DNA from: Macrostomum lignano
Taxonomy: Eukaryota
DNA length: 64,000 bases
Assembly: GCA_002269645.1 (NCBI GenBank)
Contig: NIVC01000684.1
Span: 310,001 to 374,000 of the forward strand
Reading direction: 5' to 3'
Under the pieces are notes generated by a model. The model was not told the DNA's origin. It was given only the letters and a program-made list of their open reading frames with translations, and did not search any database. The position numbers and the translations under genes are program-made. Below are positions 2,341 through 64,000 of the stretch, one piece after another (the stretch's first letter is position 1; each line of letters begins with the position of its first letter).

Positions 2341-5300
2341 CCCTCTCTCCCTCCCTCCCTCTCTCTCTCTCTCTCTTTTTTCTCACTGACTCTCTGATCT
2401 CTCCCTGACTCTCTGGTCTCTCTCTGACTCTCTTGTCTCCCTGACTTTCTGATCTCTCTCTGACTTTTGTCTCCCTGACTCTCTGATCTCTCTCTCTGAC
2501 TCTCTTGTCTCCCTGACTCTCTGATCTCTCTCTGACTCTCTTGTCTCCCTGACTCTCTGATCTCTCTCTGACTCTCTTGTCTCCCCGACTCTCTGATATC
2601 TCTCTGACTCTCTTGTCTCCCTGACTCTCTGATCTCTCTCTCTGACTCTCTTGTCTCCCTGACTCTCTGATCTCTCTCTGACTCTCTTGTCTCCCCGACT
2701 CTCTGATCTCTCTCTGACTCTTTTGTCTCCCCGACTCTCTGATATCTCTCTGACTCTCTTGTCTCCCTGACTCTCTGATCTCTCTCTCTGACTCTCTTGT
2801 CTCCCTGACTCTCTGATCTCTCTCTGACTCTCTTGTCTCCCCGACTCTCTGATCTCTCTCTGACTCTCTTGTCTCCCTGACACTCTGATCTCTCTCTGGC
2901 TCTCTTGTCTCCCTGACTCTCTGATCTCTCTCTGACTCTCTTGTCTCCCCGACTCTCTGATCTCTCTCTGACTCTCTTGTCTCCCTGACTCTCTGATCTC
3001 TCTCTGACTCTCTTGTCTCCCCGACTCTCTGATCTCTCTCTGACTCTCTTGTCTCCCTGACACTCTGATCTCTCTCTGGCTCTCTTGTCTCCCCGACTCT
3101 CTGATATCTCTCTGACTCTCTTGTCTCCCCGACTCTCTGATCTCTCTCTGACTCTCTTGTCTCCCTGACTCTGATCTCTCTCTGACTCTCTTGTCTCCCC
3201 GACTCTCTGATCTCTCTCTGACTCTCTTGTCTCCGTGACACTCTGATCTCTCTCTGGCTCTCTTGTCTCCCCGACTCTCTGATATCTCTCTGACTCTCTT
3301 GTCTCCCTGACTCTCTGATCTCTCTCTCTGACTCTCTTGTCTCCCTGACACTCTGATCTCTCTCTGGCTCTCTTGTCTCCCCGACTCTCTGATATCTCTC
3401 TGACTCTCTTGTCTCCCTGACTCTCTGATCTCTCTCTCTGACTCTCTTGTCTCCCTGACTCTCTGATCTCTCTCTGACTCTCTTGTCTCCCCGACTCTCT
3501 GATCTCTCTCTGACTCTCTTGTCTCCCTGACACTCTGATCTCTCTCTGGCTCTCTTGTCTCCCTGACTCTCTGATCTCTCTCTGACTCTCTTGTCTCCCT
3601 GAAACTCTGATCTCGCTCTGACCCTCTTGTCTCTTGACTCTAATCTTCTTGATTCTCCTATCTCAAGTATCCGAAGTTTGAGTTATTTATCGATTCTCCA
3701 CCACTGCAGGACTCATTTGGCGTTCAAATCGGTACTGCAGTTTGCCTGTCAGCCTCCGTGCTAGATCACAGGTGCCAGCCCAACGTTCACGCCTATTTCC
3801 AATCCGGCAAACTGTTAGTTAAATGCCTGACTAATGTTAACAGATTTGATCAATTAAGAATCAACTATTGCAGTTTAATGTACACCTGGAAACAGCGCAG
3901 GGAGACTCTACTTAGTCAGTACTATTTTGAGTGCAATTGTTCGCTTTGTAGCGATTATCTGATGCAAAATTCTTCGGAGCCAGACGAACTGAAGTGCAGT
4001 AAAACTGCCTGCCAAGGCGTTTGTACTGCTGTTGTTGATGGTGAGTGGGGCTGTTGCTTCGGATATTTTGCTTTTTCCGAACAACAATTTCAGTCTAACC
4101 GCCCAAACCTCCACACCCTCCCTTTCTACACCCTCCCAAATGCCCTCCCACACAAAATTCTACACACTCACTGAACTTTCCACACACCTACACACTCGTA
4201 CACACCCTCCCACACACCCTCTTACGCACCCTTCCACACACCCACACACCCTCCTACACTCCCTCCCACACACCCTCCTACACACCCTCCTACACACCCT
4301 CCCACACATCCTCCTACGCACCTTCCTAAACATCCTACGCACCCTTCCACACTCCCTCCCACACACCCTCCCACACACCCTCCCACACACTCTCCCACAC
4401 CCTCCTACACACCCTCCCACACACCCTCCTACACACCCTCCCACACACCCTCCTACACACCCTCCTACACACCCTCCTACACACCCTCCTACGCACCCTC
4501 CTACACATCCTACGCACCCTTCCACACACCCTCCCACACACCCTCCCACACACCCTCCCACACACTCTCCCACACACCCTCATTCACACCCTCATTCACA
4601 CCCTCCCACACACCATCCCACACACCCTCCCACACACCCTCCCACACACCCTCCCACACACTCTCCCACACACCCTCATTCACACCCTCATTCACACCCT
4701 CCCACACACCATCCCACACACCCTCCCACACACCCTCCTACACACCCTCCCACACACCCTCCTACACACCCTCCCACACAGCCTCCTACACACCCTCCTA
4801 CACACCCTCCCACACATCCTACGCACCCTTCTACACACCCTCCCACACACCCTCCTACACACCCTCCTACACACTCTCCATCACACCCTCCTACGCACCC
4901 TTCCACACACCCTCCATCACACCCTCCCACACACCCTCCATCACACCCTCCCACACACCCTCCCATGCACCCTCCTACACACCCTCCCATGCACCCTCCT
5001 ACACAACCTTCCACACACCCTCCCACACCCATCACACACCTTGATCCCACACCCTTCCCATCTGCCCTTCCGCATAGCTTTCCATACACCCTACCACACA
5101 AGCAAACCCTCGCCAGATTGTGAAAACAAAAGCGCAGACTAATTTCAACTGCACCCTCGCACACGAGTCTCCACAATTTCCTGTCGCCTTGTCAGACTCA
5201 TCCCAAGCGGTCACCGGGCATTCAGTTTGCGATCTGTGCACCTCTCAGCCAGCCAGTCTGGACCCCAGCCTAATCCGATCTTGGCGCAATCGGCTTCAAC

Positions 5301-15300: not shown

Positions 15301-16492
15301 GCTGCCCCTCCCCTGATGCTTCAGTGCCTGCTGCTGCCCTGTCCTGATGCTTCAGTGCCTGCTGCTGCCCCTCCCTGATGCTTCAGTGCCTGCTGCTGCC
15401 CCTCCCCTGATGCTTCAGTGCCTGCTGCTGCCCCTCCCCTGATGCTTTAGTGCCTGCTGCTGCCCCTGTCCTGATGCTTCAGTGCCTGCTGCTGCCCCTC
15501 CCCTGACCCTTCATTCACTCCAATCTTATTTCCAATTCTCCAGCTACGTAGCGGAAGAGAAGGTGAGCATCGCGCAGAAGTACCTCATCCCGGAGGTGCT
15601 GGAAGCCAGCGGCCTCCGTCCCGAACAAGTCAGCGTCACGGATGCCGCCCTGACCGCCCTGATCAGTCGCTACTGTCGCGAGTCTGGCGTGAGAAATTTA
15701 AAAAAGCACATTGAAAAATTGCTCAGAAAAGTTGCTTACAAACTGGTTGATAGCAAAACAGCCGATTCCAGTACAGCTGCCGACTGTACCAGCATTGACG
15801 AAACCAGTCTGGCAGACTTTGTCGGCAAGCCAGTGTTTAGCAGAGACAGACTGTACGACAGCACACCATCGGGTGTGGTGATGGGCCTTGCCTGGACCGC
15901 GATGGGCGGAGCCGCTCTGTTCGTTGAAACCTCATTGAAGACGCCGCCGTCTTTGACAACTACTGCCAAGAAATCTGAGAATAATAATACAGTCTCGCCG
16001 ACTCCTGCTTCTAGCAGTCTTGAACTCACCGGTCACCTTGGCGACGTGATGAAGGAGTCTGTGCGCATAGCTCACACCTATTCTCAATCGTTCCTAGCCC
16101 GCCTAGATCCCGACAATGCCGCACTACGCAGCGGCGGTATTCACATCCACGTGCCTGAGGGCGCCACACCAAAGGACGGGCCTAGCGCTGGCATCACCAT
16201 GGCAACGGGTTTATTGAGTCTAGCCTTAGACACGCCAGTCTGCCAAGAGACGGCCATGACTGGCGAGTTAAGCTTGACTGGCAAAATCATGCCAGTAGGC
16301 GGTATTAAAGAGAAAGTGATTGCTGCTAAACGGGCCGGAGTGTCCACCGTGGTGCTGCCTGAGGACAACAGGAAGGACTATGCCGATCTGCCAGAGTTCT
16401 TGCGCGACGGAGTTAAAGCTCATTTCGTGTCTCACTATAGCGAAGCGTTTCCGCTGCTCTTTCCCGACTGGGCTGGCAAGATGCCGAAATAA
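6383..16492 (+). CDS. LONP1: Mitochondrial Lon protease, about 1032 aa, 6 exons
   Basis: Exons 6383-6734, 8082-8461, 10797-10893, 11923-12715, 13873-14400, 15544-16492; phases 1,0,1,2,2; 3099 nt. Arg/Ser/Leu-rich acid-poor N-terminus (presequence-like); LAN domain; Walker A GPPGVGKT; Walker B ILIDEID; catalytic PKDGPSAG and GGIKEK; no PTS1 (ends KMPK), so LONP1 rather than LONP2. Confidence 0.97.
6757..7020 (+). mobile_element. tRNA-derived SINE with a CORE/MIR-like domain, family 1 copy A (Lon intron 1)
   Basis: A-box-like TAGTGGTTAGG, B box GGTTCGATTCT, central TGTGTCCTTGAG..TTAACTCTGC..CTTCAGTCCACCCAGCTG resembling the CORE domain; homologous copies at 30783 and 20725. Confidence 0.85.
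7373..7857. repeat. 16-bp tandem repeat in Lon intron 1
   Basis: Unit CAGTGAAATCCCAACT, about 30 copies. Confidence 0.97.
7860..8030 (+). mobile_element. 3' half of SINE family 2
   Basis: GTGTACATGCCTGACGAT..CTGTACAC..GCTCAGGAGTCAGCGGGATGGGCAG..GGTTGTGGGACA matches the reverse complement of 21765-21930. Confidence 0.65.
8575..10782. repeat. 23-bp tandem array in Lon intron 2, interrupted by a solo LTR
   Basis: Unit ATCCACTATGAGAATCAGCTCTC (variant ..CTGATCTT) at 8575-8704 and 9928-10782. Confidence 0.95.
8705..9927 (-). mobile_element. Solo LTR, 1223 bp, with 4-bp target-site duplication
   Basis: Starts TGTTATG at 8705 and ends CACCACA at 9927; TTAT duplicated at 8701-8704 and 9928-9931; removal restores a repeat unit. 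Strand is tentative, from a minus-strand AATAAA near 9050. Confidence 0.8.
10915..11885 (+). repeat. 32-bp minisatellite in Lon intron 3
   Basis: Unit GCAGCAGCAGGCACTGAAGCATCAGGGGAGGG, about 30 copies. Confidence 0.97.
12780..13850. repeat. About 27-bp minisatellite in Lon intron 4
   Basis: Unit CAATCAGCCTTCAAATCCGCCCCATTA and variants. Confidence 0.95.
14435..15505 (-). repeat. Reverse-complement copy of the intron-3 32-bp minisatellite, in Lon intron 5
   Basis: Unit CCCTCCCCTGATGCTTCAGTGCCTGCTGCTGC is the reverse complement of the 10915-11885 unit; about 33 copies. Confidence 0.97.
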
Positions 16493-19031: not shown

Positions 19032-28124
<9,093 letters not shown>

Positions 28125-30040: not shown

Positions 30041-33000
30041 ATGTCCCAAGAAGAAGCCGCAGCCCCGCCGTCTGAGACTCAGCCTCAGAGGTCGCCGCTG
30101 CCATCAGCTCCGGCTCCTGCATCAGATCCGCCAACTCCAGACTACGAGGAACTAATGAGAGATATTGAAAGCTACAATCCTGAAACGTTAAATCGGATAT
30201 TAGAGAAGCTGGCTAATCGCCAACAGACTGAGTCAGTATCGACAGTTTCGAAAGAGGAGGAGATGCAGAAGCAGCAAGAGGAGGTACAGCCAAGCTTAGC
30301 AGACAGGCTGTTGGCAATATTTCCCGATGCCTGTCCAGAATTTGTTAAAACTGAATCAGCAAACTACGAAATGGAACTTGGAGGACCCTATGCGGTTGCA
30401 AACATTGGCGACGTAGACTTGGAACCGCTGGTTAATCGTTGGCTGACTCGGGGCTATCAGAAACGAATCAAGAAATGGCAACAGCAAAAGCAACAGGAAG
30501 AACGTCAGAAAGCTGAAGCTAATAATAATCCGTTGGAAGCTGAGGTTGTCGTTGATCCGGACGAAGGCACCCTGTTTGATTGGCGCAGACAGAGACGCGA
30601 CTTTCAGCTGCGTCAGCCAGTTTACGACGCTTTAGCGCAAGAGTTTCCATTGATTACTAAACGGTTAGTATTGGGCAAGTTGCCGATATGTATCGATAAA
30701 AGCAATTAGTAGTTTTCCTACTATGTAAATAAAACTACTTATAGTAGTATCTTAGTTTCGCTATTTATAGACTGCATTTCTAGGGGTTGTAGCCTACTGG
30801 TTAGAACGACGGACTCACGACTTACAGGTCGGGCGTTCGATTCCCGATCCCACTGAAACAATTTTGTGTCCTTGAGTAAGAAACTTAACTCTGCATTGCT
30901 TCAGTTTACCCAGCTGTAAAATGGGTGCCAGCATTAGCTGGGGTAATTGAGGGTGGGTGGCGACCCCCCAGTCCTTGAACTGAACAGCCTTCAGATGCGC
31001 CGCGCAATAGCTGCGGCTGAGCTGTCGGTTGCACATCTGGCTATTAGGGCAGGCGTAATCAATTGTTATCTATTTATTGTGTTAGTACTATTTATGTAGA
31101 CTGCATGTAAACTACTCTTGTAGTAGATTTGTTATAATAAAATTTATGCTACATTTTATCTACAGAGAAGGTAATAATTTCTATTAGGCTACCTAAAAGT
31201 TGCTTAGTTTTGATATATATTGCCGATATGTATCGAAAGAGGGCATAAATTTCATTTAACTACTTTAAATAGATTAGCAGTTTCTTAATGAAGTTAAATA
31301 AATAACTACCGGAAAGTAGCATACTGTATGACGTAATAACTATACAATTGTATAATATACAACCCGCAGATCGTTATCCCAGGTTGTAAAAGCATTCAAA
31401 TATTGTCTACCGGCCGCTTACCGCTTCCTGTACAAAGTGTTAGCCTATACTGGTCAGCTATTCACTTCCGGTTCGGTAGAAACCGAAACTAACTGTGCAG
31501 TTGATTCGTGTGGTTCTACGATTGTTCAAATCTCTGATGCCTCCACCGCAGCAACTGCAGCAGAGGACTTCAGTATAGACTGGCAGAGACTGCCCTTCGA
31601 TTGTCCTCTTCAATTAGAATTGTTGCCCTCATCAACTAATGGCAACGCCAGTTTAATGCGAAGATTGTCAAATCCTAGTGCTGCTGGAGTACAGTCGGAG
31701 ACTAATGAGGAGTTGCTAAATGAATTGCGATTCGTACGGGGCCTTATGGCAGATCAGATGGCTGATTTACTGGCTACTGAAGCTGAACAGGGCAACACAG
31801 CTGCTGCTACTGGTGTAAGCTTGTCGGATTCCTTTTTTTGGGATTTAGATTGTGGGATCATATGGAAACTGGAGGAGTTTGAGAAAAGAGATAAAGGAGA
31901 AAATGGTTTCATTTATAACAGACAATGGGATTGAGGGGTTGAGAGGAGAGACAAGACAAACAGGTTGAGAGGAGAGACACAACACAAGACAAGCAGGTTG
32001 AGAGGAGAGATACAACACAAGACAAACAGGTTAAGAGGAGACACAACACAATACAAACAGGTTAAGAGGAGACACAACACAATACAAACAGGTTGAGAGG
32101 AGACACAACACAAGACAAACAGGTTGAGAGGAGAGATACAACACAAGACAAACAGGTTAAGAGGAGACACAACACAATACAAACAGGTTGAGAGGAGACA
32201 CAACACAAGACAAACAGGTTGAGAGGAGACACAACACAAGACAAACAGGTTGAGAGGAGACACAACACAATACAAACAGGTTGAGAGGAGACACAACACA
32301 AGACAAACAGGTTGAGAGGAGACACAACACAAGACAAACAGGTTGAGAGGAGAGACACAACACAAGACAAACAGGTTGAGAGGAGAGACACAACACAAGA
32401 CAAACAGGTTGAGAGGAGAGACACAACACAAGACAAACAGGTTGAGAGGAGAGACACAACACAAGACAAACAGGTTGAGAGGAGAGACACAACACAAGAC
32501 AAACAGGTTGAGAGGAGAGACAACACAAGACAAACAGGTTGAGAGGAGAGACACAACGCAAGACAAACAGGTTGAGAGGAGGAACACAACGCAAGACAAA
32601 CAGGTTGAGAGGAGAGACACAACGCAAGACAAACAGGTTGAGAGGAGAGACACAACGCAAGACAAACAGGTTGAGAGGAGAGACACAACGCAAGACAAAC
32701 AGGTTGAGAGGAGAGACACAACGCAAGACAAACAGGTTGAGAGGAGAGACACAACGCAAGACAAACAGGTTGAGTGGAGAGACACAACGCAAGACAAACA
32801 GGTTGAGAGGAGAGACACAACGCAGCTTTCATCGATCAATCCCTCAGCTGGACAATTTAGCAACAGCAAACGACAGCTCGCAACAGGAACAATCCACTTT
32901 CGAATGCGAGTGCTGTTTCGGCGATTTTCAATTCGACGAGATGTGCCAATGTCCCGAGGGTCACCTGTTCTGTCGGCCCTGCCTGGCAGCTTACGTTAAA

Positions 33001-33342
33001 GAGAAAGTCTACGGCACTGGCAGATTGACTCTGCAGTGCATGGCACCGAATTGTGACCGAATATTCCTGCGTAGTCAGCTGTGCCTGGCTGTGGACACGG
33101 CTACGCTGGCTAAACTGGACGAGAGAGCCGCCGAGGACAGCGTGAGAACCATTACTAAACTGTTTCGCTGCCCGGCCTGCAACTGGGGTGCCGAGATTGC
33201 TGAGGACGATGGCCAGGATGAGGCTACGGAGACCTCGGCTGCTGATGCTGGGGCCGGCGTTAATAATAAGGTGAGCCTTCTCGCTAATTCAGGGCGTCTA
33301 AACATTAATTTGTGTATTCTTGGGATGAGGTGACGGGCAAGG

Positions 33343-33374
<32 letters not shown>

Positions 33375-33420
33375 GCAGGCAGGCAGGCAGACAGACAGAC
33401 AGACAGACAGACAGAGACTA

Positions 33421-33453
<33 letters not shown>

Positions 33454-33518
33454 CAGACAGACAGACAGACAGACAGACACAGACAGACAGACACAGACAG
33501 ACAGACACAGACAAACAC

Positions 33519-33593
<75 letters not shown>

Positions 33594-33600
33594 CAGATAA

Positions 33601-33639
<39 letters not shown>

Positions 33640-33664
33640 CAGACAGACAGACACAGACAAACAC

Positions 33665-33727
<63 letters not shown>

Positions 33728-33770
33728 GGCAGGCAGGCAGGCCGGCAGGCAGGCAGGCCGGCAGGCAGGC

Positions 33771-33819
<49 letters not shown>

Positions 33820-33842
33820 GGCAGGCAGGCCGGCAGGCAGGC

Positions 33843-33883
<41 letters not shown>

Positions 33884-33894
33884 GGCAGACAGAC

Positions 33895-33925
<31 letters not shown>

Positions 33926-33950
33926 CAGACAGACAGACACAGACAAACAC

Positions 33951-33997
<47 letters not shown>

Positions 33998-34004
33998 CAG
34001 ATAA

Positions 34005-34047
<43 letters not shown>

Positions 34048-34083
34048 CAGATAAACAGACAGACAGACAGACAGAGAGACAGA

Positions 34084-34124
<41 letters not shown>

Positions 34125-34151
34125 GGCAGGCAGGCAGGCCGGCAGGCAGGC

Positions 34152-34204
<53 letters not shown>

Positions 34205-34227
34205 GGCAGGCAGGCCGGCAGGCAGGC

Positions 34228-34297
<70 letters not shown>

Positions 34298-35089
34298 ACA
34301 AACTGTGACAGAAGCTGCAACTCGCTCTCCCAAAGGTGTTCACCTGTCTCAACTGCGAGAAGGAGGTCTGCCGCCTCTGTGGCGCTGACTGGGAGGAGCA
34401 TTTCGGCAAGCGCTGCTCAGAGATCGAAAGGGACGCCGAGACTCGACTGCGTCGCGAGTTCGAGGAGCGAATGACACAGGCGCGGGTTCGAACCTGCTAC
34501 CAGTGCAAGACTGCCGTGATGAAGAACGGTGGCTGTAACCACATCACATGCAGGTGAGGTGAAAAACGAGTTTTAGCTTAAGGCAATCCTAGACATGTAC
34601 ATCAATTAGACACCCAAGTATCGAACAGATACATTCACTGAGACACCCATAGACAGGCAAATTCATTGAAACACCCATAGACAGACACAGTTACTGAGAC
34701 CCTCATAGACAGACACATACACTGAGACACCTATAGACAGACACATACACTGAGACACCCATAGACAGACACATAGAGTAGGCACGCAGTTAAACACAAA
34801 TTTTGTCATTTTTCGCCCTTTCAGATGCGGTGCCCACTTCTGCTACGTGTGTCGCAGCTCATTGCCAGCCAGCGATCCCTATAGCCATTTCTGTAACCAC
34901 CCAAATCCCAACGCCTGCGAATGCCACGGGTCGCGCTGTCCAGTGCAATCCAGCACCGAGGAGGACGAGAGTCGGGCCATCAGCGAGCTTCGAGCGCAAG
35001 GCTTAAAGCGTCAACGAGACGAAGGGTTCCAGGAGAGACCGATCGGTCCCGATCAACCTGGCCCGTCGAAACGTTCAAGACATTCTTGA
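30041..35089 (+). CDS. RNF216: RNF216/TRIAD3-like RING-between-RING E3 ubiquitin ligase, about 657 aa, 5 exons
   Basis: Exons 30041-30663, 31370-31814, 32848-33270, 34336-34553, 34825-35089; phases 2,0,0,2; 1974 nt (alternative in-frame ATG at 30005). RING1 ECECCF..CPEGHLFCRPC; IBR CPACNW..CLNCEKEVCRLC..HFGKRC; RING2 CYQC..GGCNHITCRCGAHFCYVC; N-terminal CUE-like LLAIFPDAC. The symbol is by motif resemblance. Confidence 0.88.
30783..31064 (+). mobile_element. SINE family 1 copy B (RNF216 intron 1)
   Basis: GGGGTTGTAGCCTACTGGTTAG, GTTCGATTCCC and CORE-like TGTGTCCTTGAGTAAGAAACTTAACTCTGCATTGCTTCAGTTTACCCAGCTGTAAAATGGG; tail shared with copy A. Confidence 0.88.
31945..32822. repeat. 31-33 bp minisatellite in RNF216 intron 2
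   Basis: Unit GAGAGGAGAGACACAACACAAGACAAACAGGTT. Confidence 0.95.
33340..34305. repeat. (GACA)n microsatellite in RNF216 intron 3
   Basis: GACA/GGCA runs. Confidence 0.97.
34620..34780. repeat. About 28-bp short tandem repeat in RNF216 intron 4
   Basis: Unit ACTGAGACACCCATAGACAGACACATAC. Confidence 0.85.
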
Positions 35090-51920: not shown

Positions 51921-52649
51921 AATTTAGTACATTTAGTATATTTTAGTATATATATATACATGTTTTGCAATATATTCAGTATGGTAAGTCAATATGGTAT
52001 AACAGTAATCAATTGCAATGCAGCAAAAACATTTTATCATTCTTTAACTATAATGCAGTGTTACTTTTTTTAAAGGCCTGCTTGCATGACAGCTATTCGT
52101 GTAAGCTCAGAATTGCATGCATAGCATATAGTGTTCTACTGTGGCACCTCTATACTAAACCCCAGGCAAACTTTTGGTTTTGGTGAAATCAAGTTCTTGA
52201 CCAAACTTTGGGGGTTCAAGCTAAGTATTTGAGTCAAGTTTTGTCAAGTAGTCAAGTAGAATAAAAATTTAGTAGTTAGTGAATTTCAAACCTCAACTTT
52301 GTTCCATTGTTTTATATTTCTGTACTAAACTTCTTAACTTTATATAGTTTCTTTTGTATTTCATATTTTTGCATTGAAACGATATTTTGTCATTTAACTT
52401 GATAGTACATGTCAAACAATGCTATATGCTACCAAAGAATTTTTAAAAGAACAAATACTTCTTTTGACACATCAATTACTTAAGGTACAGTTTTATTTCC
52501 TTTCAAACAGGTTTATTTTTAGCATTTTATTGGATTTATAGAAAATAATTTTTTATAATTTTTTAAGTCTAAATTTAATTTTCATAATATAAACTTTTTG
52601 ATCCAGCTACTACTGAAGACAGCATCTAACTAGTAGTCAGGTAAGCACG

Positions 52650-55600
52650 ATGGCAAAGTCTCTATCTGGCGCCAGTTCTGGCAGCCTGTTCTCATCGTGC
52701 ACTCTTTACCTGGCTAATCTGCCAGCTCAGGCCACTGCAACAGACATTGCCAGGGTGTTTGAACCCATAACTGGTCGCCTAGTTGATTGCCAGCTTGGTC
52801 AAAGCGGCACTGGTTTGCTGGTCTGTCAGAGGCCTGATCTTGCTGAACGAGCTTACGATACCGAGTTGGCCGTGTTTGGTCGGCCTATTATTATTAGATT
52901 GCAGCCAGCTCAGATTAGAACTAATCAATCTGCTTATAATACTGTAAGTAGTAGCAATAGACATCGAAATAATCAGCATCAGAATCAGTCGCGGCGTCAG
53001 CAGCAGCAGCAAAGAAGTCGCCAGAGATGGTCGCAGAATCAACGATGTAGGAATGGTGAGACAAAAACAAACTTGAAATGTTTCATGCAGTAAAAGCATT
53101 TCCCCTGATATCAAGTATTCCTTTCTCGAGCCTTGACCTCTCAGCATCTCCCTTTCTTGAGCCTTGACATCTCAGCATCTCCTTTCTCGAGCCTTGACGT
53201 CTCAGCATCTCCCTTCTTGAGCCTTGACATCTCAGCATCTCCCTTCTTGAGCCTTGGTATCTCAGCATCTCCCTTCTTGAGCCTTGGTATCTCAGCATCT
53301 CCCTTCTTGAGCCTTGACATCTCAGCATCTCCCTTCTTGAGCCTTGACGTCTCAGCATCTCCCTTCTTGAGCCTTGACATCTCAGCATCTCCCTTCTTGA
53401 GCCTTGACGTCTCAGCATCTCCCTTCTTGAGCCTTGACATCTCAGCATCTCCCTTCTTGAGCCTTGGTATCTCAGCATCTCCCTTCTTGAGCCTTGGTAT
53501 CTCAGCATCTCCCTTCTTGAGCCTTGGTATCTCAGCATCTCCCTTCTTGAGCCTTGACATCTCAGCATCTCCCTTCTTGAGCCTTGACGTCTCAGCATCT
53601 CCCTTCTTGAGCCTTGGTATCTCAGCATCTCCCTTCTTGAGCCTTGGTATCTCAGCATCTCCCTTCTTGAGCCTTGGTATCTCAGCATCTCCCTTCTTGA
53701 GCCTTGACATCTCAGCATCTCCCTTCTTGAGCCTTGATATCTCAGCATCTCCTTTCTCAAGCCTTGACATCTCAGCATGTCTCTTTCAGCCTTAGCATAA
53801 TGAAGATTAATAAACCTTGAATATGGTGTAGAATCCCATAATTTTTCCAATGTTTCATTCAAATTGTCAGGTACAAGCGCAAAGTCTGATTCAAATACTA
53901 CTACAACAGACGAGAGTCGCCTCTGTAGCCAAGCAAACAGAGCATTAAATCTTAATCAGAAATCAACTAGCAACAGCTCCGATACAGTAGAATCTAGCCT
54001 GCGCTGTTCTAGGCAAGCCTTGGAACTGGCTATACGCGAGAGAAACACCGCTAAGCTAGAAGCCGTAGCTGCAAAATGGCCAGGCGGTACTGCTGCATTT
54101 GCCGAATTCTGTTCAGTGAATTCTGGTGCCGGATACAGATCGGCACCGGGTTCTTGCCTCTGGTGCATGATTTAGTGTCCGAGGCTAGAAAGCCAAAGGA
54201 ATTGCTGCTACAGCTGATTGAGTGCTGCAGAGTCGGACTGGACGAGAAGCAGGTGAGTTACCATGTATGCTAAATTGGTTCTTCACTGATGTACCTTACT
54301 GGGGTTAGTGTGATTCACCGATGTAAATGTACGGGATTTGTGATTCACTGATGTACCTACTTGGGATTAGTGTGATTCACTGATGTACCTACATTTGATT
54401 GGTGTGATTCACTAATGTACCTACATGGGGTTAGTGTGATTCACTAATGTACCTACATGGGATTAGTGTGATTCACTGATGTACCTACATGGGGTTAGTG
54501 TGATTCACTAATGTACCTACATGGGATTAGTGTGATTCACTAATGTACCTACTTGGGATTAGTGTGATTCACTGATGTACATGCGTGGGATTAGTGTGAT
54601 TCACTAATGTACCTACATGGGATTAGTGTGATTCACTGATGTACCTACATGGGGTTAGTGTGATTCACTAATGTACCTTACTGGGGTTAGTGTGATTCAC
54701 TAATGTACCTACGTGGGATTAGTGTGATTCATTGATGTACCTACATGGGGTTAGTGCGATTCACTAATGTACCTACATGGGATTAGTGTGATTCACTGAT
54801 GTACCTACATGGGGTTAGTGTGATTCACTAATGTACCTACATGGGATTAGTGTGATTCACTAATGTACCTACATGGGATTAGTGTGATTCACTGATGTAC
54901 CTACATGGGATTAGTGTGATTCACTGATTTACATGCGTGGGATTAGTGTGATTCACTGATGTACCTACAAGGAATTAGTTTGATTCACTAGTTCATTAGT
55001 TATTAATAAACTAACCAGGCCGCAGACACAGTGAATCGCTTAGTGAACAGTCGTGATCAGTACGGCTTCACGCCGCTTCACCGAGCCGTTCGCAGCGGTT
55101 CAGACGAGGCCGCCGAAATTCTATTAGCTAACGGAGCCGATGCCACCGCTGTGACTGACAGAGATCGTAGGACAGCATTGCACATTCACCTGTGGCTGGG
55201 TTGCGGCCCATTGGCTTATAGACTATTACACTCTGGCGCTGATCCTGACGCGTGCGATGCTGACAACTGGACACCGCTGCATTGGTGCGCTAAGAATGCT
55301 CACCTGGATTTTGCAAAGCATCTGATTTGCAAGCGGGGTGTACGACTGTTTCGGTGAGTTGTGAGTCTTTTCATTTAGAATGTTACAGGCATGAAATTTA
55401 GGGTTTAGAAGTCTAAGTCTGAAGGTTTAGGTTTAAGGGGTCATTGAAGCTGAAAATTTAGGTTTATGGGGTCATTGAAGCTGAAAATTTAGGTTTATGG
55501 GGTCATTAATGCTGAAAATTTAGGTTTATGGGGTCATTAATGCTGAAAATTTAGGTTTATGGGGTCATTAAAGCTGAAAATTTAGGTTTATGGTGTCATT

Positions 55601-56395
55601 AAAGCTGAAAATTTAGGTGTATGGGGTCATTAAAGCTGAAAATTTAGGTTTATGGGGTCATGCAAGCTGAAAATTTAGGTTTATAAGGTCATTTAAGGTA
55701 TATAAATGTTTTCACATTTATTAGAAGAAAATTTGAAGACAATTGTTTAAAATCCTATGAAATTTAAGTTTTCAACCAGGTAATTCTTAGAAAAAAACAT
55801 TTATAACATTTCAAGTTCCCAGGGCTGCACACTGAGCCCGCTGAAGCTCTGTCTGCAACAGATCAACCAGTGTGTGAACGGTCCGATAGCTCGAACTCAA
55901 CAGCAGCAACAACCGCAGCAGCAGCAAGAAGATGTTCTCCAGTCTCTGTTCGCCATCGCCCGCCTGCTGCTTCGACACGGTGCCGTTCTGCCAGCGCAGT
56001 CGTTCCTAGCTGACTGGCTTGTGGCCACCAGCAGCGACAATGTCCGTTGGTCGCCTCAAAATTCGACTGCTCAGCGCTATACTCAACTGGTTCACCTGCT
56101 AGCTGCTGAAGGTGCCGACTATGTTATTCTTGAGGACGTTGACTCTGATGCCGTTGTCGAACCTGCCGACGATGTCGGCGTCAGAACGCCAAGATCGCTT
56201 GTCCAACTGTGCCGACTCAGCATTCGATCCCGGCTTCGACTTCTAAGCGGCGGTCGTAGCATTCTGAGTCGATTGAATCGGCTCCCGTTGCCACCCAGAT
56301 TGTTGCGGCTTGTAGATTTGCCAGATCTGGCTGTTGGGGATGGCGGAGAAAATGGAGATTTCACCTGTGCTGTAAATGTGCAGTATCGGGAGTGA
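52650..56395 (+). CDS. RRM + ankyrin-repeat + SOCS-box locus (ASB-like), with a frame discontinuity near 54065-54175
   Basis: Exon 52650-53055 (RRM: TLYLANLP..IARVFE..GTGLLVC..RPIIIRLQP, then Q/N/R-rich); phase-1 splice to 53871; frame change near 54116-54138; exon end 54252; ankyrin exon 55019-55353 (GFTPLHRA, RRTALHIH, NWTPLHWC); last exon about 55816-56395 with SOCS box PRSLVQLCRLSIRSRL..LPLPPRLLRLV. The last acceptor is uncertain (55816 or 55823). Confidence 0.75.
53130..53790. repeat. 30-bp minisatellite in the intron after the RRM exon
   Basis: Unit GAGCCTTG(AC/GT)ATCTCAGCATCTCCCTTCTT, about 22 copies. Confidence 0.97.
54280..54990. repeat. 32-bp intronic minisatellite
   Basis: Unit GATTCACTGATGTACCTACATGGGGTTAGTGT. 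Confidence 0.95.
55430..55690. repeat. 30-bp intronic minisatellite
   Basis: Unit AAGCTGAAAATTTAGGTTTATGGGGTCATT. Confidence 0.95.
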
Positions 56396-56429
56396 CTTTC
56401 TCAACTTGAAAATGTTGCTTTAGGAGTGA

Positions 56430-56940
56430 AAATCTAGAGTGACTTTCAGGAGTGATATCTAGAGTGACTTTCAGGTGTGACATCTAGAGTGAATTTCATG
56501 AGTGACTTCTAGAGTGACTTTCTGTAGTGACATCTAGAGTGACTTTCTGGAGTGACTTTCATGAGTGACATCTAGAGTGACTTTCAGGTGTGACATCTAG
56601 AGTGACTTTCATGAGTGACATCTAGAGTGACTTTCAGGTGTGACATCTAGAGTGACTTTCATGAGTGACATCTAGAGTGACTTTCAGGTGTGACATCTAG
56701 AGTGACTTTCATGAGTGACATCTAGAGTGACTTTTAGGAGTGACATCTAGACATCTAGAGTAACTTACATGAGTGACATCTAGAGTGACTTTCTGTAGTG
56801 AAATCTAGAGTGACTTTCTGTAGTGAAATCTAGAGTGACTTTCATGAGTAACTTCTAGAGTGACTTTCTGTAGTGAAATCTAGAGTGACTTTCAGGAGTG
56901 ACTCATGAGTGACTCGAGTGATTTACTAGTGTGACTTAGC
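56430..56940. repeat. 25-bp tandem repeat just after the SOCS-box stop codon
   Basis: Unit TCTAGAGTGACTTTCAGGAGTGACA. Confidence 0.93.
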
Positions 56941-57394
56941 AGTGCTTTTCTGCACTGAAGTGGGACTTAAGAGTAACTTATACATGTCCTATACTCAATT
57001 TTATTGTTAAGTTATTAGTACATAATGTTTAATTGTGCCTAAAAACACAAGTTCATTTGTTATAAAAGAATATTTATGCATTTTTGCTTGGTTTTTTGCT
57101 TCTGTAAATATGTTAGCGCTTGGTCAAGTTCAATAATCGCTATTAAAAGATGTGTGTAGATTTTTTGGTTTTGCTTTTAAATGTTTCACATTAATTTACA
57201 ATAAAACATAATTTGAATTGAAAATTTGTTTAAGCAAAAGTGCTTTTATTTACGCAATTTATTTAAAGGGATGTGTTATTTTTAATATTTTGCTTTTAAA
57301 GCGAATATTCTAGCTGAACTACTTACAGTAAACCCCGAAAAATTTCAGTCGTATTGATTGCTCTACTTCTAACGAAAAACGAAAACAACATAAA

Positions 57395-58371
57395 ATGTCG
57401 TCATCAACAACTATTAGTAAAGACAGTGCTGCAGCTGCTTGCAATAATAATTCTTCTTCTTTAACGTCTGGAATTTCCGCTTCTATTGCCCCGGTGGTTT
57501 TTTCTGTTCCCGATTCTTGCGACGAAACGTCGTCGTCGTCGTCAAAAGTGACATCAGCACCGACAACAAATGAGCCGCCAACTGCCGTCCGACGTCAGAC
57601 AAGTCTTGGCGATTATTTTCCAGCTGAGTTGGCTGTTCGGTCTTCTATTAGTTCACAGCAGCAGCAGCAACATGGCAAACGTAGACAGCAGCAGCAGCAG
57701 CCGCCTCGTCACCGAGTTACTCGTCCAGCGTCGTCTGCTGCCGTCGCCGTAGCCAACGACGATAGCGGCTATGGCGATGTTGGCGATATTGAAGAGAGAA
57801 AGTTGCGGGATTGTTTAGCCTTAGCGTTCACTTCTTCGCCGCGCCAGCAGCAGCAGCAGCAGCAACAACAACAGCCGCATAGCGTAGCGTCAGCCTCAAC
57901 ATCCGTAGCGCCTCAACTGTTTAACGATCCTTTCGGCTTGGCTAAATTAGCAGATCAAGTTGATAAAGATGTCGGCGTTGTTAATGCTAACGGCGGTCCG
58001 CTGAACCAGTCGTCATCGACAAATTCTTCGAGGTCGTCTTCGTCACCATCGACATCGGTGTCGATTGGCAGAACGTCGTTAAGCGACGAAGACGAACAAC
58101 CGGTCGATGATGGCAATTCTCAGCGTCTTGGTGCCGATCTTGCAGCCGGAGCCGCTGTCTACAGTGTCGGCGGCGTCGGTTTGTCGACGTTCGGTGTCGG
58201 TGAATCAACTGAAGATGACGATCGTCTGTTTCTTGCAGCCGGTGCCAATTCGCTGTTTGGGTCTTCAATGTTTGTGAGTTGAGCAGTGAGAATAGCGGGT
58301 CTCTGGCTTCTTTAGCGACTCTCGGTGTCTGTCTGTTTATCTGTCTGTCTGTCTGTATGTCTGTTTATCTG

Positions 58372-58412
<41 letters not shown>

Positions 58413-60436
58413 GACTGACTGTCTGTATGTCTGTCTGTCTGACTGTCTGTCTGTATGTCTGTCTGTCTGTCTGTATGTCTGTCTGTCTGTCTGTCTGTAT
58501 GTCTGTCTGTATGTCTGTCTGTTTGTCTGTCTGTCTGTATGTCTGTCTGTATGTCTGTCTGTCTGTCTGTCTGTCTGTATGTCTGTCTGTCTGTTTGTCT
58601 GTCTGTATGTCTGTCTGTCTGACTGTCTGTCTGTATGTCTGTCTGACTGTCTGTCTGTATGTCTGTCTGTCTGTCTGTCTGTATGTCTGCCTGTCTGTCT
58701 GTCCCTCCCTGTCCGAGCAAAACCATTCAACAATCCCCATGCCGCATCATCCCAATTCGCCACTCTGCAGTCCGCCGCTGGCAGCCCGTCTGACCGACCG
58801 CTGCATCAACATCGCTTTGCCGACGGTGCCTGGCGTCGCAGAACCGGCGGCAGCAGCCACCAAGGCGGCAACGACGATCGCGAACTGTTTGTCGGCAATT
58901 TAGCCGCCGAAGTGACTAACGAAGATTTAGTTCGAATATTTTCTGAATTCGGTCCGCTGAAATCTGTCGGCATCGCCAAAGATTCCACTAGCGGAGCCTG
59001 CAAAGGCTTCGGGTTTCTCTGCTTTCAGCAGCCTGAATTGGCCGAAACTGTGCTAGAAAGTCCTCGACTGTTCACCCTCTACGGCCGGGTGCTCAGGGTT
59101 GACTGGCGGCTTAAGAATCCCGGTCACCATGGCAACCATACTAATAGGCGATTATCTTCATCTTCGGGTTGCATTGGCTCGCCTAGGCAGTATAATTATC
59201 AGCAGGTGCAGCTCGGCGCCAACTTGGCTAATACTGATGATGCTTCTGTACTGCCATCTGTTGATGATGATGAAGCCGCTAACGGAGGCTGCGGCCTAAA
59301 CGGCGACTGTCAGCTGTTTGTCGGCAATTTAGCTTCGGATGTTACCCAAGGCGATCTGCGTCAATATTTTCGACGCTGGGGCGAATTGCTTTATTGCTAC
59401 GTGATTCGCGATGAAGATGGCCAGTCCAAGAGATACGGATTCATTACGTTTAAGGTTTGGCTTTTCAGATTGAGGATTGGCTGTTTTTTAGGGTAGTTTT
59501 TTAAGGGATTGAATCTCATAGGATGAGATCTTCAACCTAATCTCAGGGGTAAGATTGTCCGCATGTCATCTCAGGGGTGAGATTGTGAGATGTCATCTCA
59601 GGGATGAGATTGTCAGAATTTCATCTCAGGGGTGAGATTGTCAGCATGTCATCTCAGGGGTGAGATTGTGAGATGTCATCTCAGGGATGAAATTGTCAGA
59701 ATGTCATCTCAGGGGTGAGATTGTGAGATGTCATCTCAGGGGTGAGATTGTCAGCATGTCATCTCAGGGGTGAGATTGTCAGCATGTCATCTCATGGGTG
59801 AGATTGTCAGCATGTCATCTCAGGGGTTAGATTATCAGAATGTCATCTGAGTGGTGAGATTGTCAGCATGCAGAGTTAGTCAGTGAATTTATTGACAAAG
59901 ATATCGTTCCCAATAAAATGCAGGACCCGAAAGTGGCCGAGCAGCTGATGCAGTCCCGATCGAGTCACGTGCTCAAAGGCAAGCGTTTGCGCTTCGAAAT
60001 GCCGAAACGCAGTCGCGAGGAAGCGTTCAGCCTCCGGCAGCAGGATGCTTCATCCTCGTCGGCGACTTCAACGCCGAAGACATCGCCGGGTGCTCCGACA
60101 ACTCCGGCTTCTACGAAGCTGTCTCAGCAGCAGGTTGTCTCGCCTGAGCAGAACCAGTCGGTCCCAGCCGGTCTAGAGCAGAGCTCATCTGATCAGCTGC
60201 CATTGTGGCTGCATCTGCGTTTAATGTCTGACAAGGAGCAGCTGATCCTGTGCCTGCGCAAAGAGCTCGGCTTGTGCGGCCTGTTGGCCGAGAGGCGAAT
60301 GCGTGAGATTAGCCAGGCCCGGGACCGGGAGGCCCAGCTGATGCGGGTCTACGTGCAGCAGTTGGAGGCTCAGGTCAAGGCTCAGACTGCCGAACTGGAG
60401 ACCCTGCGGCACCAGCTGGAGTGTCGGGGCGAACAG
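57395..60436 (+). CDS. RNA-binding protein with a low-complexity N-terminus, two RRMs and a predicted coiled coil; 3'-incomplete (692 aa in window)
   Basis: Exons 57395-58273, 58771-59454, 59924-60436, all phase 0. RRM1 LFVGNL..KGFGFLCF; RRM2 LFVGNL..KRYGFITF|KDPKVAEQL..LKGKRLRF; C-terminal ERRMREISQARDREAQLMRVYVQQLEAQVKAQTAELETLRHQLE; donor GTACTG at 60437. Confidence 0.88.
58325..58710. repeat. (TGTC)n microsatellite in intron 1 of the two-RRM gene
   Basis: TGTC/TGTA runs. Confidence 0.97.
59535..59870. repeat. About 28-bp minisatellite in intron 2 of the two-RRM gene
   Basis: Unit GTCATCTCAGGGGTGAGATTGTCAGCAT. Confidence 0.93.
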
Positions 60437-63400
60437 GTACTGTGTCTGTTTCTCACTGTGTCTGCTTCTCGCTGTGTCTGCTTCTCACTGTCTGCTTCTC
60501 ACTGTGTCTGCTTCTCACTGTCTGCTTCTCACTGTATCTGCTTCTCACTGTGTCTGCTTCTCGCTGTGTCTGCTTCTCACTGTGTCTGCTTCTCGCTGTG
60601 TCTGCTTCTCATTGTCTGCTTCTCACTGTCTACTTCTCGCTGTATCTGCTTCTCACTGTCTACTTCTCGCTGTATCTGCTTCTCACTGTCTACTTCTCGC
60701 TGTGTCTGCTTCTCACTGTGTCTGCTTCTCGCTGTGTCTGCTTCTCACTGTCTGCTTCTCACTGTATCTGCTTCTCACTGTGTCTGCTTCTCGCTGTGTC
60801 TGCTTCTCACTGTGTCTGCTTCTCACTGTATCTGCTTCTCACTGTGTCTGCTTCTCACTGTGTCTGCTTCTCACTGTCTACTTCTCGCTGTATCTGCTTC
60901 TCACTGTCTACTTCTCGCTGTATCTGCTTCTCACTGTCTACTTCTCGCTGTGTCTGCTTCTCACTGTCTACTTCTCGTTGTGTCTGCTTCTCACTGTCTA
61001 CTTCTCGCTGTGTCTACTTCTCACTCTGTCTGCTTCTCACTGTGTCTGATTCTCACTGTGTTTACTTCTCACTGTCTACTTCTCGCTGTGTCTGCTTCTC
61101 ACTGTCTACTTCTCGCTGTATCTGCTTCTCACTGTCTACTTCTCGCTGTGTCTGCTTCTCACTGTCAACTTCTCGTTGTGTCTGCTTCTCGCTGTGTCTG
61201 CTTCTCGCTGTGTCTGCTTCTCACTGTCTACTTCTCACTGTGTCTACTTCTCACTGTGTCTGCTTCTCACTGTGTCTGCTTCTCATTGTCTACTTCTCAC
61301 TGTGTCTGCTTCTCACTGTGTCTGCTTCTCACTGTGTCTGCGTCTCATTGTCTACTTCTCACTGTGTCTACTTCTCACTGTGTCTGCTTCTCACTGTGTC
61401 TGCTTCTCACTGTCTACTTCTCATTGTATCTACTTTTCACTGTGTCTGCTTCTCGCTGTGTCTGCTTCTCACTGTGTCTGCTTCTCGCTGTGTCTGCTTC
61501 TCGCTGTGTCTGCTTCTCACTGTGTCTGCTTCTCGCTGTGTCTGCTTCTCACTGTCTGCTTCTCACTGTATCTGCTTCTCACTGTGTCTGCTTCTCGCTG
61601 TGTCTGCTTCTCACTGTCTGCTTCTCACTGTATCTGCTTCTCACTGTGTCTGCTTCTCGCTGTGTCTGCTTCTCACTGTGTCTGCTTCTCGCTGTGTCTG
61701 CTTCTCACTGTCTACTTCTCGCTGTATCTGCTTCTCACTGTGTCTGCTTCTCACTGTGTCTGCTTCTCACTGTCTACTTCTCGCTGTATCTGCTTCTCAC
61801 TGTGTCTGCTTCTCGCTGTGTCTGCTTCTCACTGTCTACTTCTCGCTGTGTCTGCTTCTCGCTGTGTCTACTTCTCACTCTGTCTGCTTCTCACTGTCTA
61901 CTTCTCGCTGTATCTGCTTCTCACTGTGTCTGCTTCTCACTGTGTCTGCTTCTCGCTGTGTCTGCTCGCTGTGTCTACTTCTCACTCTGTCTGCTTCTCA
62001 CTGTGTCTGATTCTCACTGTGTTTACTTCTCACTGTCTAATTCTCGCTGTGTCTGCTTCTCACTGTCTACTTCTCGCTGTGTCTGCTTCTCACTGTCTAC
62101 TTCTCGCTGTATCTGCTTCTCACTGTCTACTTCTCGCTGTGTCTGCTTCTCACTGTCTACTTCTCGCTGTGTCTGCTTCTCACTGTCTACTTCTCGCTGT
62201 GTCTGCTTCTCGCTGTGTCTGCTTCTCGCTGTGTCTGCTTTTCACTGTGTCTACTTCTCACTGTGTCTACTTCTCACTGTGTCTGCTTCTCACTGTCTAC
62301 TTCTCGTTGTGTCTGCTTCTCACTGTCTACTTCTCGCTGTGTCTACTTCTCACTCTGTCTGCTTCTCACTGTGTCTGATTCTCACTGTGTTTACTTCTCA
62401 CTGTCTACTTCTCGCTGTGTCTGCTTCTCACTGTCTACTTCTCGCTGTATCTGCTTCTCACTGTCTACTTCTCGCTGTGTCTGCTTCTCACTGTCAACTT
62501 CTCGTTGTGTCTGCTTCTCGCTGTGTCTGCTTCTCGCTGTGTCTGCTTCTCACTGTCTACTTCTCACTGTGTCTACTTCTCACTGTGTCTGCTTCTCACT
62601 GTGTCTGCTTCTCATTGTCTACTTCTCACTGTGTCTGCTTCTCACTGTGTCTGCTTCTCACTGTGTCTGCGTCTCATTGTCTACTTCTCACTGTGTCTAC
62701 TTCTCACTGTGTCTGCTTCTCACTGTGTCTGCTTCTCACTGTCTACTTCTCATTGTATCTACTTTTCACTGTGTCTGCTTCTCGCTGTGTCTGCTTCTCA
62801 CTGTGTCTGCTTCTCGCTGTGTCTGCTTCTCGCTGTGTCTGCTTCTCACTGTGTCTGCTTCTCGCTGTGTCTGCTTCTCACTGTCTGCTTCTCACTGTAT
62901 CTGCTTCTCACTGTGTCTGCTTCTCGCTGTGTCTGCTTCTCACTGTCTGCTTCTCACTGTATCTGCTTCTCACTGTGTCTGCTTCTCGCTGTGTCTGCTT
63001 CTCACTGTGTCTGCTTCTCGCTGTGTCTGCTTCTCACTGTCTACTTCTCGCTGTATCTGCTTCTCACTGTGTCTGCTTCTCACTGTGTCTGCTTCTCACT
63101 GTCTACTTCTCGCTGTATCTGCTTCTCACTGTGTCTGCTTCTCGCTGTGTCTGCTTCTCACTGTCTACTTCTCGCTGTGTCTGCTTCTCGCTGTGTCTAC
63201 TTCTCACTCTGTCTGCTTCTCACTGTCTACTTCTCGCTGTATCTGCTTCTCACTGTGTCTGCTTCTCACTGTGTCTGCTTCTCGCTGTGTCTGCTCGCTG
63301 TGTCTACTTCTCACTCTGTCTGCTTCTCACTGTGTCTGATTCTCACTGTGTTTACTTCTCACTGTCTAATTCTCGCTGTGTCTGCTTCTCACTGTCTACT

Positions 63401-64000
63401 TCTCGCTGTGTCTGCTTCTCACTGTCTACTTCTCGCTGTATCTGCTTCTCACTGTCTACTTCTCGCTGTGTCTGCTTCTCACTGTCTACTTCTCGCTGTG
63501 TCTGCTTCTCACTGTCTACTTCTCGCTGTGTCTGCTTCTCGCTGTGTCTGCTTCTCGCTGTGTCTGCTTTTCACTGTGTCTACTTCTCACTGTGTCTACT
63601 TCTCACTGTGTCTGCTTCTCACTGTGTCTGCTTCTCATTGTCTACTTCTCACTGTGTCTGCTTCTCACTGTGTCTGCGTCTCATTGTCTACTTCTCACTG
63701 TGTCTTCTTCTCGCTGTGTCTACTTCTCACTGTGTCTGCTTCTCACTGTGTCTGCTTCTCACTGTCTACTTCTCATTGTATCTACTTTTCACTGTGTCTG
63801 CTTCTCGCTGTGTCTGCTTCTCACTGTCTACTTCTCGCTGTATCTGCTTCTCACTGTCTACTTCTCGCTGTGTCTGCTTCTCACTGTCTACTTCTCGCTG
63901 TGTCTGCTTCTCACTGTGTCTGCTTCTCGCTGTGTCTGCTTCTCACTGTCTGCTTCTCACTGTGTCTGCTTCTCACTGTCTGCTTCTCACTGTATCTGCT
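60437..64000. repeat. 14/16-bp intronic satellite with a 1329-bp higher-order duplication; runs off the window
   Basis: Units CTGCTTCTC(A/G)CTGTGT and CTACTTCTC(A/G)CTGT; rare variants recur at a fixed 1329-bp offset. Confidence 0.95.

Follow-up and report, generated by a model that had tools for sequence, protein, structure and literature searches.

A divergent RRM-derived domain joined to ankyrin repeats and a SOCS box in Macrostomum lignano, encoded by two gene copies of which one has a split reading frame

Introduction

Does Macrostomum lignano encode a protein in which an RRM is joined to the ankyrin repeats and C-terminal SOCS box that characterize the ASB family, and is the gene copy described here able to produce it? 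The gene in question lies on the + strand of M. lignano contig NIVC01000684.1 (assembly Mlig_3_7, GCA_002269645.1), at about 310001-374000 of that contig, within a stretch of 64,000 nucleotides (nt) that we call the window and whose positions are used as coordinates throughout. An earlier annotation of this stretch, here termed the original prediction, had placed an RRM exon in front of ankyrin and SOCS-box exons with one frame change between them, and had suggested that the product is an RNA-binding receptor of Elongin/Cullin-5 ligases. Judged by its sequence, the gene is one of two M. lignano copies coding for a predicted ubiquitin-ligase adaptor of the ankyrin-repeat/SOCS-box type with a divergent N-terminal RRM. 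The RRM-ankyrin-SOCS fusion exists in M. lignano, and the window copy of it is broken. Taken together, the evidence makes it probable that we are dealing with a lineage-restricted gene combining an RRM-derived domain, ankyrin repeats and a SOCS box, present as two duplication copies, of which the paralog is intact and the window copy has been disabled by an insertion of the bases TC.

Gene model and intact paralog

The exons, introns and domains of the window copy are the following:

52650-53055, + strand: exon 1, from the start ATG at 52650 to the donor G/GTGAGA in phase 1, coding for 135 amino acids (aa) plus one base
52701-52904, + strand: divergent RRM-derived domain (TLYLANL...GRPIIIRLQ), recognized by sequence similarity to RRMs
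52947-53054, + strand: low-complexity linker in which Q, N and R abound (SSSNRHRNNQHQNQSRRQQQQQRSRQRWSQNQRCRN), from direct reading
53056-53870, + strand: intron 1, GT...AG with acceptor TGTCAG, consisting mainly of a 30-nt tandem repeat in 22 copies (53119-53785)
53871-54252, + strand: exon 2, an S/T-rich linker and helical lead-in to the ankyrin domain, with donor CAG/GTGAGT in phase 0; it holds the frameshift
54253-55018, + strand: intron 2, GTGAGT...CCAG, phase 0, with a 32-nt tandem repeat in 22 copies (54282-54989)
55019-55353, + strand: exon 3, three canonical ankyrin repeats (55064-55339), with donor G/GTGAGT in phase 2
55354-55815, + strand: intron 3, G/GTGAGT...TTCAAG/T, phase 2, with a 31-nt tandem repeat in 9 copies (55419-55697)
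55816-56395, + strand: exon 4, ending in the TGA stop (56393-56395) after a 27-aa tail that follows the SOCS box; its ankyrin repeats are degenerate and carry a poly-Q insert
56186-56314, + strand: SOCS box, scored by Pfam SOCS_box at 29.2-33.7 bits (E 4e-8 to 1e-6; gathering score 23.5)

Re-reading and translation of the window placed the exons, their splice phases and the junction 53055/53871 exactly where the original prediction had them. An in-frame TGA (52614-52616) is found 5' of the ATG at 52650. For exon 4, the acceptor CAG/G at 55822 was also considered and rejected: it implies a second frameshift at the boundary between exons 3 and 4, whereas the upstream TTCAAG/T, which starts exon 4 at 55816, restores the frame and agrees with both GenBank proteins of this gene, the junction LFR/SQG being common to the window model, PAA78518.1 and PAA91307.1.

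The second genomic copy, found by cluster look-up, resides on contig NIVC01000090.1 and corresponds to GenBank PAA91307.1 (BOX15_Mlig032031g1, 575 aa, 5'-partial). Transfer of the window exon boundaries to the sequence fetched for this paralogous locus (L001) yielded PAA91307.1 residue for residue over its 575 aa, and the paralog open reading frame (ORF) is uninterrupted, with 567 aa counted from its own ATG. PAA91307.1 spans all of exon 1, crosses the exon 1-exon 2 junction as RCRN/GTSAK and runs continuously (...EFCSVNSGAGYRGTGFLPLVHDL...) through to the SOCS box. The GenBank annotation was derived from RNA-seq transcript assembly, using StringTie and TACO together with a mapped de novo transcriptome, and its ORFs were called by TransDecoder (PMC5730564); consequently, at least for the paralog, the fused ORF and its exon 1-exon 2 junction rest on a coding sequence (CDS) model derived from RNA-seq. 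The proposed joining of exon 1, in phase, to the ankyrin and SOCS-box exons is thus borne out by the presence of RCRN/GTSAK in this transcript-derived protein, with the caveat that the two copies are identical around that junction, so that short reads cannot distinguish them there.

The sequences of this gene were already deposited, unnamed, as 'hypothetical protein' or 'ANK_REP_REGION domain-containing protein', and no paper turned up when Mlig032031 and Mlig013927, its two gene identifiers, were searched in full texts. PAA78518.1 (BOX15_Mlig013927g2) is exactly the 363-aa ankyrin-SOCS ORF of the window copy. UniProt A0A1I8GPJ2 is an exact prefix of the window-based model that uses a 23-nt gap and a weaker exon 1 donor (52878/GTCGGC), while the intact copy is represented by a sister entry, A0A1I8GKR9. 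A further entry, A0A1I8FJA9, is a chimeric prediction in which the last exon of the ASB gene, first out of frame and then in the SOCS box, is joined to the RRMs of the downstream gene; being chimeric, its label 'RRM domain-containing protein' has no bearing on the exon 1 fusion.

Minisatellites occupy all introns of the gene as well as the region just 3' of its stop (53119-53785, 54282-54989, 55419-55697 and 56424-56937), with units of 30, 32, 31 and 25/50 nt in 9-22 copies, and the paralog has arrays at matching places with other copy numbers.

Ankyrin repeats and SOCS box

Exon 3 and its neighbours match Pfam Ank, Ank_2, Ank_3, Ank_4 and Ank_5 above the gathering scores, with Ank_2 reaching 64.8-74 bits against a threshold of 27.3 (E 1e-17 to 1e-20), and about six repeats, three canonical and the rest degenerate, precede the SOCS box. 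The BC box, which contacts Elongin C, has the consensus [STP]-L-x-x-x-[CSA]-x-x-x-hydrophobic, and direct reading finds SLVQLCRLSI at 56195-56224. The Cul5 box LNRLPLPPRLLRLV (56273-56314) contains LPLP, an instance of LP-Phi-P, the motif that Cul5 binding requires (PMC4812663); the aromatic residue usual near its end is replaced by L. A phmmer search of the SOCS-box tail against PDB sequences returned no SOCS-box structure, the domain being too short, and the Pfam profile alone detects it. The claim of ankyrin repeats followed by a C-terminal SOCS box is confirmed, both being above their Pfam thresholds. The domain content includes all the sequence-level ASB features that we examined; the ORF that encodes it is uninterrupted in the paralog and interrupted in the window copy.

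The split reading frame of the window copy

The features that bear on the reading frame are all located in exon 2:

54076-54078, + strand: internal ATG, the first in exon 2, which opens a 363-aa ankyrin-SOCS ORF to the normal stop in another frame
54116-54138, + strand: 23-nt GT-AG 'intron' of the earlier model; its paralog equivalent is coding (VNSGAGY and part of R)
54140-54141, + strand: insertion of TC relative to the intact paralog (ACAGA[TC]GGCACC), a frame shift of +2, from DNA alignment of both loci
54173-54175, + strand: premature TAG, which ends the RRM-linker ORF from the ATG at 52650 at 236 aa in the spliced transcript

Apart from the insertion, exon 2 is identical in both copies (0 substitutions over 380 aligned nt), the site reading ACAGATCGGCACC in the window and ACAGAGGCACC in the form without TC. 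The frame change noticed by the original prediction is therefore real and of the indel kind, but the DNA alignment with the paralog shows two inserted bases instead of the single-nucleotide indel that had been offered as one repair. The spliced mRNA of the window copy has two overlapping ORFs in different frames, of 236 and 363 aa, and exon 2 carries ATGs only at 54076 and 54167. The 363-aa ORF is what a longest-ORF caller would select, in keeping with its presence in GenBank. As its sequence reads, the window copy cannot produce the fusion protein.

A0A1I8GPJ2 reads the codon ATC (I) across the site, which implies that a second gene set carries TC too; this gene set is presumably from an earlier M. 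lignano assembly. Its support for the insertion is not fully independent, as two assemblies may share raw reads. Exact look-ups of the unspliced window ORFs in public assemblies, sought as independent support for TC, gave no match. With the second gene set in view, we think that the insertion is real. The two bases are located inside a short inverted repeat, GGTGCCG-gatacagat-CGGCACC (54132-54154), whose arms are 6 bp long in the paralog and 7 bp in the window; a hairpin-templated mutation might have given rise to them.

Divergence of the two copies and distribution of the gene

A recent whole-genome duplication has been described in M. lignano, and the assembly is highly redundant (PMC10468722, PMC5730564); the two copies would have been left by that duplication. 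Between them, the unique sequence from about 52990 to 54985, exonic and intronic, has 0 substitutions, the unique flanks of intron 1 being identical, and the TC insertion is the sole difference inside it. The identical tract (52990-54985 in the window, 6365-8190 in L001) covers the end of exon 1, the intron edges and all of exon 2, while its flanks differ by 2-8%; it is a low-divergence tract that possibly originated by gene conversion. Selection at synonymous sites was considered as the cause of the lack of synonymous changes in exons 1 and 2 and rejected, given that the adjoining unique intron is identical as well. If real, the TC insertion would be very young, since it lies in this tract.

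The remaining exons have diverged unevenly. Exon 3 displays seven synonymous changes and one non-synonymous change, with a ratio of non-synonymous to synonymous differences per site (pN/pS) of 0.05, on which basis the ankyrin core appears to have been under purifying selection. In exon 4, the stretch preceding the SOCS box has a pN/pS of 0.49 and the SOCS box itself shows no amino-acid change. Exon 1 differs by four non-synonymous changes and no synonymous one, numbers too small to indicate purifying selection, or its absence, on the RRM part.

Searches with the N-terminal 225 aa retrieved only M. lignano proteins, both in a word-indexed search of 5.8 billion sequences and in an exhaustive HMMER search of 1.84 billion cluster representatives, libraries from which other Macrostomum proteomes may be absent. 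Outside M. lignano, the matches of the ankyrin-SOCS half were of the generic ankyrin kind, and ASB14 (E 1e-8 over 17% of the query) was the highest-ranking ASB with a name. A word-indexed search with the exon 4 protein (55816-56392) found no match at E<=10 and missed known self-matches too, which makes it uninformative on absence; poly-Q words dominating the candidate list are perhaps behind this failure. On these searches the gene appears to be lineage-restricted, to one species as far as seen.

The exon 1 domain and its relationship to RRMs

The 'RRM exon' of the original prediction requires qualification. RNP2, with the consensus hexamer [ILV]-[FY]-[ILV]-x-N-L, is retained as LYLANL (52704-52721). 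For RNP1 we took the octamer [RK]-G-[FY]-[GA]-[FY]-[ILV]-x-[FY] as the criterion, and the equivalent segment, SGTGLLVC (52803-52826), keeps both glycines and has lost all three aromatic positions when aligned to ASD-1. Searched with exon 1 in its entirety, Pfam found no RRM match at E<=1; the trimmed domain scored 12.3-12.6 bits with RRM_1 (PF00076; E 0.13-0.16), below the threshold of 20.7, in register with profile positions 1-56. RRMs made up nine of the 15 best matches when PDB sequences were searched with phmmer, led by ASD-1 of the Fox family (E 0.018, aligned over the entire domain) and NONO-1 (E 0.021).

The next gene downstream encodes the nearest relative that could be detected for this domain:

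58885-59106, + strand: RRM1 of the downstream gene, Pfam RRM_1 at 100.9 bits

BLASTP aligned the two over the whole domain with 28% identity across 86 residues (30.4 bits, E 1e-6), including a shared Q-x-P-[DE]-L-A-E stretch. Out of 3000 shuffles, not one attained their Smith-Waterman score of 69 (shuffle mean 22.4, standard deviation 4.3, maximum 46; z 10.9). A six-frame tblastn search of the window, with the domain as query, gave this same RRM1 as its only significant match (E 4.7e-4), and at the paralogous locus the E value was 9e-5. A single-sequence AlphaFold2 model of the N-terminal 102 aa, at a low mean predicted local distance difference test score (pLDDT) of 54.9, displays a beta1-alpha1-beta2-beta3 order followed by an ill-formed alpha2; Foldseek searches with this low-confidence model retrieved mainly RRMs (hnRNP M, Hrb1, RBM9, and TDP-43 RRM2 with a target-normalised template modelling score of 0.62), all at E >= 0.2.

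On these alignments we conclude that the exon 1 domain, though divergent, is truly related to RRMs and that a chance origin of the likeness is excluded. What stands of the RRM claim is a significant homology to a bona fide RRM; the score remains below the Pfam RRM_1 threshold and the RNP1 aromatics are gone. As these aromatics are lost and the N-terminal searches found no homolog outside M. lignano, canonical RNA binding by the domain seems doubtful.

Alternative explanations

Several observations weigh against the reading of an RRM-derived/ankyrin/SOCS gene with one disabled copy. The trimmed exon 1 domain does not reach the RRM_1 threshold, the four non-synonymous and no synonymous changes in exon 1, small as these numbers are, do not point to purifying selection on the RRM-like part, and AlphaFold yielded low-confidence models (pLDDT 55 for the N-terminal part and 38.8 for the full 575-aa paralog protein). 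Moreover, no homolog beyond M. lignano in the two N-terminal searches supports a conserved architecture. As for the insertion, it could be a shared assembly error, and the otherwise complete identity of exon 2 and the adjoining unique intron means that TC is either very recent or not real.

Three other accounts of the window copy can be considered. In the repair preferred by the original prediction, a micro-intron of 23 nt (54116-54138), or alternatively one of 74 nt (54065-54138), is spliced out to give a fusion of 559 or 542 aa. The necessary GT and AG are present, the frame arithmetic fits, translation with the 23-nt gap reproduces the 559-aa model exactly and a gene predictor picked the same solution (A0A1I8GPJ2); however, the homologous bases are coding in the transcript-derived CDS of the paralog, where they read VNSGAGYR and where deleting 23 nt breaks the frame, the transcript-based GenBank CDS of the window copy starts at the internal ATG without such an intron, and the other three introns of the gene measure 462-815 nt. 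We know of no animal spliceosomal intron as short as 23 nt. The paralog contradicts the 23-nt intron and the 74-nt one is unsupported, so that splicing of either is hardly credible; to judge from the aligned copies, the 23-nt 'intron' is a gene-prediction artefact of frame rescue. It is also unlikely that TC is an assembly error and that the window copy is intact, coding for a 566-aa RRM-ankyrin-SOCS protein like the paralog. The assembly is based on PacBio reads (PMC5730564), a lone indel is conspicuous where exon 2 and the adjacent unique intron have no substitutions, and the low pN/pS of the ankyrin exon suggests constraint on both copies until recently; against this, the same insertion is implied by A0A1I8GPJ2 from a different gene set, and two bases inserted outside a homopolymer are an atypical error of a long-read consensus. 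Finally, the window copy might have split its functions, making a 236-aa RRM-linker protein and a plain 363-aa ASB (N-terminus MARRYCCICRILFSEFWCRIQ) that would be translated from the ATG at 54076 on transcripts lacking exon 1, for example transcripts trans-spliced at exon 2. This ATG is the first in exon 2, spliced-leader trans-splicing affects 38.8% of M. lignano genes (PMC5730564), and comparison of the copies indicates strong purifying selection on the ankyrin exon. Nevertheless, nothing that we found points to a transcript lacking exon 1, a 236-codon ORF and many ATGs precede the second ORF in the complete transcript, and the near-identity of exon 2 suggests that selection has had too little time to act on so young an insertion. 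Furthermore, the stop at 54173 is upstream of two exon junctions, a position that usually triggers nonsense-mediated decay, and we consider a functional split quite improbable.

A different objection concerns exon 1, whose domain might not be an RRM in any functional sense, its likeness being a relic or due to chance in a fast-evolving and possibly non-functional extension. The sub-threshold RRM_1 score, the missing RNP1 aromatics, the exclusively non-synonymous changes between the copies, the low-confidence model and the lack of homologs found outside M. lignano all fit this view. On the other side, the similarity to a bona fide RRM_1 domain covers the whole domain and exceeds every shuffle, no other significant match comes out of tblastn across the window, and RRMs prevail among the best PDB and Foldseek matches. 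Chance is thereby excluded, and a relic without RRM function is rather unlikely.

Proposed function and fate of the two copies

The intact product would have, in order, a divergent RRM-derived domain, a linker rich first in Q/N/R and then in S/T, about six ankyrin repeats and a canonical SOCS box. By its domains, and by analogy with other SOCS-box proteins, it may act as an ASB-type substrate receptor whose BC box docks Elongin B/C and whose LPLP docks Cul5-Rbx2, following the docking scheme of this class (PMC4812663; PMC3779351). The ankyrin repeats and the N-terminal domain would select the target, and the RRM-derived domain, together with the basic Q/N/R-rich linker, could add a contact with RNA, a ribonucleoprotein (RNP) or a protein. 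Since two of the three RNA-stacking aromatics are lost, the exon 1 domain may bind protein, or RNA in a non-canonical manner.

As for the proposed RNA-binding Cul5/Elongin receptor, the coexistence of RRM-derived, ankyrin and SOCS parts in one paralog ORF speaks for it, while the broken window ORF and the degenerate RNP1 speak against it. In its strongest form, which would concern the paralog and, should TC be an artefact, the window copy too, an RNA-guided Cullin-RING ligase 5 receptor whose N-terminal RRM, captured recently in the Macrostomum lineage from the neighbouring gene, recognizes RNA or RNP and aims ubiquitination at RNA-bound proteins, we take the idea as tentative and doubtful.

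The window copy is most simply seen as a recently disabled duplicate, which would give a truncated RRM-linker peptide from an mRNA that is probably subject to nonsense-mediated decay; its ankyrin-SOCS ORF would be translatable only from an exon-1-less transcript or by reinitiation. For users of the databases, the 23-nt 'intron' of the UniProt model calls for caution as a frame-rescue artefact, and with two entries recognized as halves or artefactual splice forms of one gene the annotation of the locus is corrected.

The downstream gene and other features of the window

The next gene downstream (57350-64000, + strand; L001 10783-15139) codes for 792 aa in GenBank and 771 aa at the paralogous locus, with two canonical RRM_1 domains, and the order of the two genes is the same at both loci. 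Its CDS begins right after a TTTCAG acceptor at about 57349 that looks like a spliced-leader acceptor, which is why it may share a transcription unit with the ASB gene. The similarity between its RRM1 and the exon 1 domain is, as one comparison, consistent with local domain capture from the adjacent RRM gene, and the locus may offer a compact example of recent domain accretion beside the likely donor gene.

A (TGTC)n microsatellite of 95 copies (58326-58703) is located within a mechanical ORF (58279-59496) that also contains RRMs of this neighbour, and is presumably intronic. More than 20 further long tandem arrays take up much of the window, with units of 4-48 nt and up to 246 copies (for instance 2381-3641, 9930-15513, 23247-24429 and 31951-34300), and these arrays account for its extreme GC/AT skews. 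The 32-mers of the array at 10914-11882 are the reverse complement of those at 14433-15513.

Comparison with known systems

With the ASB family (vertebrate ASB1-18, for example ASB9 and ASB11), whose expected role is that of Elongin B/C-Cul5-Rbx2 substrate receptors (PMC4812663, PMC3779351), the M. lignano protein shares ankyrin repeats that are followed by a SOCS box, in which a BC box of the form SLxxxCxxxI and an LPLP Cul5 box are present. It differs in its RRM-derived domain and long linker (~225 aa), which have no counterpart in described ASBs, in the poly-Q insert within an ankyrin repeat and in the 27-aa tail after the SOCS box, and it shows no clear orthology to any vertebrate ASB. Our literature search for an ASB with an RRM found no paper describing one, in agreement with the original prediction, which knew of none.

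The protein encoded downstream resembles the fusion in its RRM1, the RRM nearest to the exon 1 domain, but has canonical RNP1 motifs (KGFGFLCF and KRYGFITF) and neither ankyrin repeats nor a SOCS box. Ankyrin repeats are combined with a nucleic-acid-binding module in ANKHD1/ANKRD17, which carry a KH domain, and in RNase L; these proteins have no SOCS box, their RNA-binding fold is another one and their sequences are unrelated. The RNA-binding ubiquitin ligases, such as CNOT4 (RING and RRM), MEX3 (KH and RING) and MKRN (CCCH and RING), likewise unite an RNA-binding-type domain and ligase function in one polypeptide. Known members of this group are of the RING, HECT or RBR types and thus carry their own catalytic domain (PMC5707401), whereas the protein described here is a candidate Cullin-5 receptor with degenerate RNA-binding residues. 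Provided that the intact protein does what its domains lead one to expect, an RRM-type module would here be seen for the first time in an ASB/Cullin-5 receptor.

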